Part shown: one piece after another, positions 19,668 through 19,760 of the stretch
Position numbering within the stretch: position 1 is the first letter of the stretch
Layout: the number at the start of each line of letters is the position of its first letter
Assembly (NCBI GenBank): GCA_977016875.1
Contig: CDRNST010000091.1
Span: 558,001 to 622,000, forward strand
Length of the DNA stretch: 64,000 nt
Direction: 5' to 3'
Origin: Pavona decussata
Lineage: Eukaryota
Program-made: the position numbers and the translations under genes
Notes under the pieces: model-generated
Told to the model about the DNA's origin: nothing
Databases searched by the model: none
Seen by the model: the letters and a program-made list of their open reading frames with translations, nothing else

Positions 19668-19760
19668 CTTCATGGTCATCTGTTGCAAGTCTAGGTTTCT
19701 TTGGAACTGGAGAGCCACTTGGATATAACGGTCTTTTGCCCTTTTCTGCGGCTTGACTCT
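19668..19760 (-). CDS. Gene A exon 5 (linker with bipartite NLS-like KRPLYPSGSPVPKKPRL)
   Basis: cttcaccag|AG...GAAG|gtaagt; 93 nt, phase 1-1, open frame ESQAAEKGKRPLYPSGSPVPKKPRLATDDHE. Confidence 0.85.

Follow-up and report, generated by a model that had tools for sequence, protein, structure and literature searches.

In the coral Pavona decussata, a 93-nt mini-exon between the glycosyltransferase and NACHT exons of an NLR-type receptor gene encodes a short peptide that, judging from sequence comparison, is under coding constraint and matches the consensus of classical bipartite nuclear localization signals (NLS) beyond what is expected by chance. The explanation that we prefer, and in which our confidence is evenly balanced, is that this exon, exon 5 of the gene denoted here A, is a skippable cassette with a functional bipartite NLS of the classical type, and that the signal is weakened in the adjacent gene B and in the paralogous copies of the KQPK type. 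The exon itself appears to be a conserved, cassette-type component of the flexible linker that joins the GT4 head to the NACHT domain in acroporid-type coral NLR genes. Its job would be to present a single linear motif, namely, KR (in KGKRPL), a spacer of 10-12 residues rich in S, T and P, and P-K-[KQ]-x-[KR]-L.

The window, that is, the whole 64,000-nucleotide stretch of contig C91 of the coral genome that was analyzed, encompasses two tandem minus-strand genes, A and B, each of which consists of a large GT4-conflict exon and a second large exon of about 1,220-1,250 codons that encodes the NACHT domain, as identified with Pfam. In gene A, the GT4-conflict glycosyltransferase exon (21295..22513, minus strand; PF20706, E 9e-84), in the translation of which an E-x7-E motif is seen, ends in phase 1 at 21295 (G/GTATGT, the slash marking the exon boundary), and its 5' edge is the limit of the open reading frame, with no mapped splice site. 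The corresponding exon of gene B (45411..46635, minus strand; PF20706, E 1e-86) likewise ends in phase 1, at 45411 (AAA/GTAAGT). The NACHT exons, which give PF05729 matches with E 3e-22 in gene A and 4e-23 in gene B, both start in phase 1 and are located at 14836..18515 (minus strand; acceptor CCCAG/CAG, frame open until the stop at 14836) and at 38718..42247 (minus strand; acceptor CCTCAG/CAG), respectively; within the NACHT exon alone, no LRR match was detected by Pfam at E <= 0.01. All four junctions are in phase 1, and RefSeq homologs connect the same exons in predicted transcripts. The exons of the window were searched singly, these homologs taking the place of a joined protein. Both NACHT-exon acceptors are tandem NAGNAG sites (window positions 18513-18520, CCCAGCAG, and 42245-42252, CCTCAGCAG); from the letters of these sites, the protein would gain or lose a single residue depending on which of the two acceptors, separated by 3 nt, is used.

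Genes A and B are about 88% identical over the NACHT exon and the 3' region (14639-18524 versus 38521-42257) and 76% identical over the GT exon (21289-22939 versus 45405-47047), and the 2.8-kb linker between GT and NACHT does not align at all, except, at low stringency, for the mini-exon, the sole linker segment with a significant match between A and B (73% over 75 nt, E 1e-6). This mosaic pattern suggests recombination or gene conversion among members of an array that contains two linker subtypes. The neighborhood is rich in repeats. Immediately downstream of gene A are the ORFs of a BEL/Pao-type LTR retrotransposon (5859-10640, minus strand), with Pfam matches to a gag-like aspartyl protease, reverse transcriptase, Peptidase_A17 and DUF5641. 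Long G-rich satellite arrays with a repeat unit of about 80 bp and strong GC skew precede the two GT exons on their upstream sides (23920-27010 and 47190-50660) and cross-match in both orientations. A palindromic MITE-like element of 121 bp is present in two copies (97.5% identical, matching in both orientations), one at 12684-12804, about 2 kb downstream of the stop codon of the gene A NACHT exon, and the other at 42282-42402, in an intron of gene B immediately upstream of the NACHT-exon acceptor.

Exon 5 of gene A lies between the GT4 and NACHT exons (19668..19760, minus strand; 93 nt, phase 1-1) and encodes KGKRPL, a spacer, and P-KKPR-L; more precisely, the peptide contains KR, a 10-residue spacer rich in S, T and P, KKPR, and then L-A-T-D-D, an acidic tail. 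Two bases complete a split codon at the start of the exon and one base opens another at its end. The acceptor AG (19761..19762, minus strand) closes the sequence TTCACCAG, with a T-rich tract before it, and reads ACCAG in all type-A paralogs, the type-B acceptor being a CCAG located 12 nt upstream of the type-A site in the alignment of paralogs. The donor GT (19666..19667, minus strand; AG/GTAAGT) is kept in all paralogous exons that were read that far. In gene B, exon 5 (42923..43051, minus strand; 129 nt, phase 1-1; acceptor CCAG/, donor CAG/GTAATT) encodes KGKRPL, a spacer of 18 residues counted from KR, and P-KQRK-L, and the strict bipartite consensus fails. The spacer is longer by 6 codons owing to tandem 18-nt copies (43007-42990 and 42989-42972, minus strand) that differ by one mismatch, a duplication limited to 3 of the 14 type-B paralogous exons (gene B, L040 and L043). 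Among the mini-exons, lengths of 93, 111, 129 and 72 nt were seen, all multiples of 3 and all phase 1-1. Because the GT exon ends and the NACHT exon starts in phase 1, the mini-exon is spliced in frame and can be skipped without a frameshift. A second KGKRP-coding site in an intron of gene B, around 43990, was dismissed as a chance occurrence, with its frame interrupted by stops.

The first-pass annotation had read gene A as KR-x10-KKPR at the classical bipartite spacing, which the exon translation bears out, and gene B as KR-x18-KQRK with the spacer lengthened in part by an 18-nt tandem duplication, which is also what we found, down to the single base at which the copies differ. Its description of a dedicated symmetric mini-exon, numbered exon 5, holds as well, because a further phase 1-1 exon of 108 nt lies upstream. 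This exon 4 (20501..20608, minus strand; acceptor GACAG/, donor AGAG/GTATAG) is homologous to the "GTQGKQPATK...EPTQSGI" linker exon of the Acropora and Montipora models.

The match to the NLS consensus was evaluated with a strict form, KR-x(10-12)-K[KR](x)[KR], and with the looser Robbins rule that requires 3 of 5 residues to be basic; the bipartite consensus KR-x10-12-K[KR]x[KR] reportedly goes back to Robbins and Dingwall and to Kosugi and colleagues. Exon 5 of gene A satisfies the strict form, as do those of 5 further type-A paralogs. Elsewhere in the 1,696 residues encoded jointly by the GT exon, exon 4, exon 5 and the NACHT exon of gene A, neither a K[KR]x[KR] nor a bipartite match occurs. 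When peptide A was shuffled, only 0.07% of the permutations reached the strict consensus and 1.1% the looser rule, and among 155,971 residues of background (120 related NACHT-exon ORFs) there was a single strict match. For importin-alpha, the constraint expected of a bipartite signal falls on the KR pair at the minor site and on the P2 lysine and a basic P5 residue at the major site, P2 and P5 mattering most and P3 and P4 being tolerant. The Pavona genome encodes importin-alpha IBB domains, in split IBB/ARM exons. Under the NLS explanation, the gene A motif would be a signal of the nucleoplasmin/RB type, with KR bound in the minor NLS groove of importin-alpha and K-K-P-R in positions P2-P5 of its major groove. 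Competence for import would then come with the full motif, in isoforms and paralogs alike, copies with KQPK, KQAK or an 18-residue spacer, such as that of gene B, would be weaker or non-functional signals, and localization could be adjusted by including or skipping the symmetric exon. Furin-type sites, SH3, WW and MYND ligands, the caspase DxxD motif and the polo-box S-[ST]-P motif were also considered for this peptide and discarded as absent or inconsistent across copies.

At least 103 GT4 exons are present in the genome. When it was searched with peptides A and B and with a 17-row profile, 25 mini-exon copies were recovered, all on contigs C91 and C289, and 24 of the 25 GT exons in the clade defined by at least 73% identity have a mini-exon downstream. 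These searches detected the family only in the 25-gene C91/C289 clade and found no mini-exon for the remaining 75 or more GT4 exons. As a weak negative, the 1.5-kb flanks of 12 distant-clade loci (L019-L030) yielded neither a homolog of any Acropora linker module nor a recurrent basic phase 1-1 exon. Along C91, between 23 and 640 kb, the two types are interspersed, without blocks, in the order B,B,B,B,A,A,B,A,A,A,A,B,A,B,B,B,B,A,B,A, where the second and third A represent two type-A exons 2.1 kb apart (C91:150301-150387 and C91:152412-152498), downstream of one partial GT exon. Going by its exon content, this pair at about 150 kb may represent a gene with a duplicated NLS-like cassette, comparable to the A. 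digitifera models, in which there are up to four modules.

The 21 of the 25 copies that were read reveal the pattern of constraint. The acceptor is kept in all 21 copies and the donor in all 20 with sequence reaching it; every copy is open, and the indels within the exon, of 18, 6, 3 and 21 nt, are each a multiple of 3. In a codon-by-codon comparison, KGKRPL is invariant in 21/21, with synonymous-only variation in five of its six codons, and each of the seven codons preceding it specifies 2-5 different residues. The first-pass annotation had staked its proposal in part on conservation of the motif in paralogs, and the acceptor and KGKRPL are retained in every copy read. These data bear on the possibility that the exon is a functionless disordered spacer, with the similarity among copies stemming from recent tandem duplication and the NLS match being coincidental. 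The family is, indeed, a young, fast-duplicating tandem array in which linker modules are freely gained, lost and duplicated, and within each subtype the introns flanking the mini-exon are similar as well. However, between subtypes A and B the exon aligns and the introns do not, the changes in KGKRPL are synonymous only, the indels are all in frame, the motif persists across three genera, and the rates of coincidental matches in shuffled and background sequences are very low. We therefore disfavor the functionless spacer and consider it very improbable.

The second basic cluster tells a more nuanced story. It takes the form P-K-[K/Q]-[P/R/A]-[R/K]-L, with essentially no variation at P, at the first K (kept in 20/20), at the final basic position ([KR] in 20/20) or at L (19/19), and with variation at the positions that correspond to P3 (K/Q) and P4 (P/R/A). 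The retained K and [KR] are the residues that would occupy P2 and P5 of importin-alpha, so this is the pattern of constraint expected of an NLS. Only 6 of the 21 copies, all of type A, conform to the strict consensus; 3 (KR-x11/12-KQRK) satisfy only the looser "3 of 5 basic" rule, and 3, gene B included, have a spacer of 17-18 residues. In 8 copies, the second cluster is KQPK or KQAK, with two basic residues only, and in one (L037) it is removed by a 21-nt deletion, so that the cluster is weak or lost in 9/21. Gene B and most type-B paralogs thus miss the consensus, having KQRK after 18 residues, or else KQPK or KQAK. The earlier assertion that the basic clusters persist while the rest of the exon diverges is accordingly fully valid for the first cluster (21/21) and only partly so for the second, and NLS scoring across the family divides in the same manner, 15 of the 21 copies failing the strict form, 9 of these with a weak or lost second cluster.

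Homologs of the exon outside Pavona were identified among RefSeq models in two ways: representatives were searched exhaustively with the GT exon, and another search was directed at the linker. The homologous exon is present in models from Montipora capricornis, M. foliosa, Acropora digitifera, A. millepora, A. muricata and A. palmata, which join the GT exon, linker mini-exons and the NACHT exon. The Montipora models contain KR-x10-KKQR, and the common last linker exon in Acropora contains KR-x12-KKQRR followed by D-T-D. The module was found in 35 of 42 GT-NACHT linkers, 24 of which match the bipartite consensus in the [KR][KR] form and 15 in the strict KR form, and no other block of the linker is as well conserved when 15 such proteins are aligned. 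Acropora also possesses a sister module, G-R-R-P-L-H-L-H-P-S...V-M-E-Q-R-H-D-T-D, with an acidic residue in the second cluster, in which P-L-H-L-H-P-S, T-P-P-V and D-T-D are retained and M/K-E-Q-R-H/R replaces KKQR. As far as such residue patterns go, this acidic variant suggests either that the conserved partner may be something other than importin or that NLSs are restricted to a subset of the copies. In GT4-TRADD-N proteins, further relatives of the module are missing one cluster or both. Given these relatives with acidic or lost clusters, the exon family is conserved beyond what an NLS needs, and only some of its members are credible NLSs.

It is possible, if on balance somewhat doubtful, that the exon presents a conserved linear motif for a partner other than importin, with the NLS resemblance of some copies being a by-product of a basic, proline-rich peptide. 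Candidates for such a motif would be a docking or phospho-regulated site for a kinase, an adaptor, or the receptor's own domains. In favor of this possibility, positions irrelevant to an NLS are also kept, namely, P-L after KR, the P-S...[ST]-P-P core, the L that follows the second cluster, and the D-T-D/T-D-D tail, and many members hold these non-basic positions while the second cluster drops basic residues or gains E. Furthermore, some Acropora copies contain RR-x-L-x-L followed by S/T-P sites, which resembles MAPK docking, the comparison being with the D-motif consensus for such docking. However, the window's own copies do not have the L-x-L of the D-motif, and the residues that are invariant in the genome are exactly KR and K...[KR] at bipartite spacing. 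No solved peptide complex resembling the motif was found in PDB searches: the exon 5 peptide alone gave no match, and the best match of the exon profile, CENP-U at E 0.24, is at chance level and was rejected.

The basic residues might alternatively bind nucleic acid or acidic membrane lipids electrostatically, as a patch that tethers the receptor and is no import signal, which we consider unlikely. Two basic clusters within a linker predicted to be disordered would suit such a role; in the AlphaFold2 model of a Montipora homolog, the linker is coil with pLDDT 26-43, in a model that is poor as a whole (mean pLDDT 42, 15-row alignment). Basic clusters are also enriched after the GT domain, K[KR]x[KR] occurring in 14 of 35 representative post-GT linkers of GT4-head proteins compared to 7 of 64 control windows and 15% of shuffles. 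This survey is not independent support, because 3 of the 4 strict bipartite matches in it are homologs of exon 5. The peptide has only five to six basic residues and an acidic tail, with no aromatic or hydrophobic anchor and no lipidation site, and what is conserved is position, not charge count. An AT-hook was considered separately and rejected: the R-G-R-P core is missing from the peptide, in which, in K-G-K-R-P, one more residue separates G from R-P.

Returning to the preferred explanation, a bipartite NLS on a cassette, the second half of the proposal concerns splicing. The first-pass annotation regarded use of the exon in mRNA as decisive, and the homologous exon is included in predicted RefSeq models of both Acropora and Montipora. 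In these models, the linker is a variable string of a few types of phase-1 cassette exons, and predicted isoforms differ by whole cassettes. In A. digitifera LOC107343052, isoform X11 skips exactly the NLS-type exon of X10, and the junction residue fits a phase-1 skip; in LOC107354137, the exon is present in X4 and X14 and not in X13, and in A. palmata LOC141864545, it is present in X2 and not in X7. Both isoforms compared in Montipora capricornis keep the exon. All these isoforms are predictions, and RefSeq models in near-identical tandem arrays can be chimeric; the NCBI pipeline reports alternative variants only when there is transcript support. Because predicted Acropora isoforms include or skip the homologous cassette, a splicing switch at exon 5 is plausible. 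Several cassette types of the linker are common to GT4-NACHT proteins and to proteins in which GT4 is combined with other C-terminal domains, the NLS exon not being among those shared, and, from this distribution, linker exons seem to travel with the GT head across architectures. Among the Acropora proteins, P0302, P0304, P0308 and P0309 combine GT4 heads with TRADD-N/vWA, TRADD-N/kinase, or vWA.

The motif may confer importin binding, nuclear import and a nuclear role on the full-length receptor, which is about 1,700 residues long. Modification of nuclear proteins or DNA by the GT4 domain is a candidate idea, drawn solely from the comparison with phage GT-B enzymes. Kaur et al. 2021 offer another proposal, in which the targets glycosylated by metazoan GT4 effectors are invader or interface molecules, and the passages of that paper that were searched contain no mention of the localization of these effectors (PMC8195603). 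A bolder scenario, to which we assign a low probability, is that the linker between GT and NACHT serves as an address label under the control of alternative splicing, such that inclusion of a full-strength NLS cassette sends some GT-armed NLRs, or their released GT heads, into the nucleus, where chromatin, transcription factors, or the DNA or protein of invading viruses would be glycosylated by GT4. If true, this would amount to a nuclear enzymatic effector arm of animal NLR immunity, without a vertebrate counterpart.

The expansion of GT4 (glycosyl transferase group 1)-NACHT-LRR genes in corals has already been described (Hamada et al. 2013, cited in PMC10236652; PMC12314368; PMC8195603), and the genes analyzed here share with those the domain architecture and the tandem-array genomics and form a single family with the RefSeq models of Acropora and Montipora. 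The searched passages of these three papers cover domains and copy number and do not mention an NLS motif or a modular linker made of cassette exons. Hence what is known is the GT4-NACHT-LRR genes of corals and the existence of NLS-bearing NLRs, and what seems new is the NLS-like cassette exon and the modular linker, for which no paper was found in the literature search. Hundreds of coral genes couple a GT4 glycosyltransferase to NLR-type sensors, and a separately spliced peptide that fits the importin-alpha consensus provides the first concrete, cheap handle on their site of action. Should the NLS prove genuine, the search for acceptor substrates would narrow, and linker cassettes would emerge as a means to diversify localization within an expanded receptor family; should it be refuted, exon 5 would still be the best-conserved motif of the linker and a handle for the binding partner of the receptor.

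Comparison with well-characterized systems puts these features in perspective. OGT, a GT41 enzyme with the GT-B fold, carries a repeat-based recognition module, enters the nucleus via a short signal, and glycosylates nuclear proteins. The coral receptors resemble it in the fusion of a GT-B glycosyltransferase to a recognition module, a functional parallel that is speculative, and differ in that OGT represents another GT family, has no STAND NTPase, and is encoded by a single-copy housekeeping gene. With respect to the signal itself, the nucleoplasmin NLS starts with KRP and ends with KKKKLD, and that of RB is KR-x11-KKLR; the gene A peptide is similar in having KR-P..., a 10-residue spacer, K-K-P-R-L and acidic residues, within an S/T/P-rich stretch that is predicted, at low confidence, to be disordered. 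In contrast to those signals, the second cluster of many coral paralogs has Q at P3 and no more than two basic residues, the gene B spacer is 18 residues long, and additional non-basic positions are conserved. Finally, CIITA and NLRC5 in vertebrates and nuclear NLRs of plants such as RPS4 are NACHT or NB-ARC receptors with a basic NLS outside the NTPase core, so that where these large STAND proteins reside depends on a signal. The coral proteins are likewise STAND receptors with an NLS-like signal, here putative, outside the NTPase core. However, whereas CIITA, NLRC5 and RPS4 serve as transcriptional regulators or partners, without an enzymatic head, the coral receptors are equipped with an N-terminal GT4 module and carry the motif on a cassette exon of its own.
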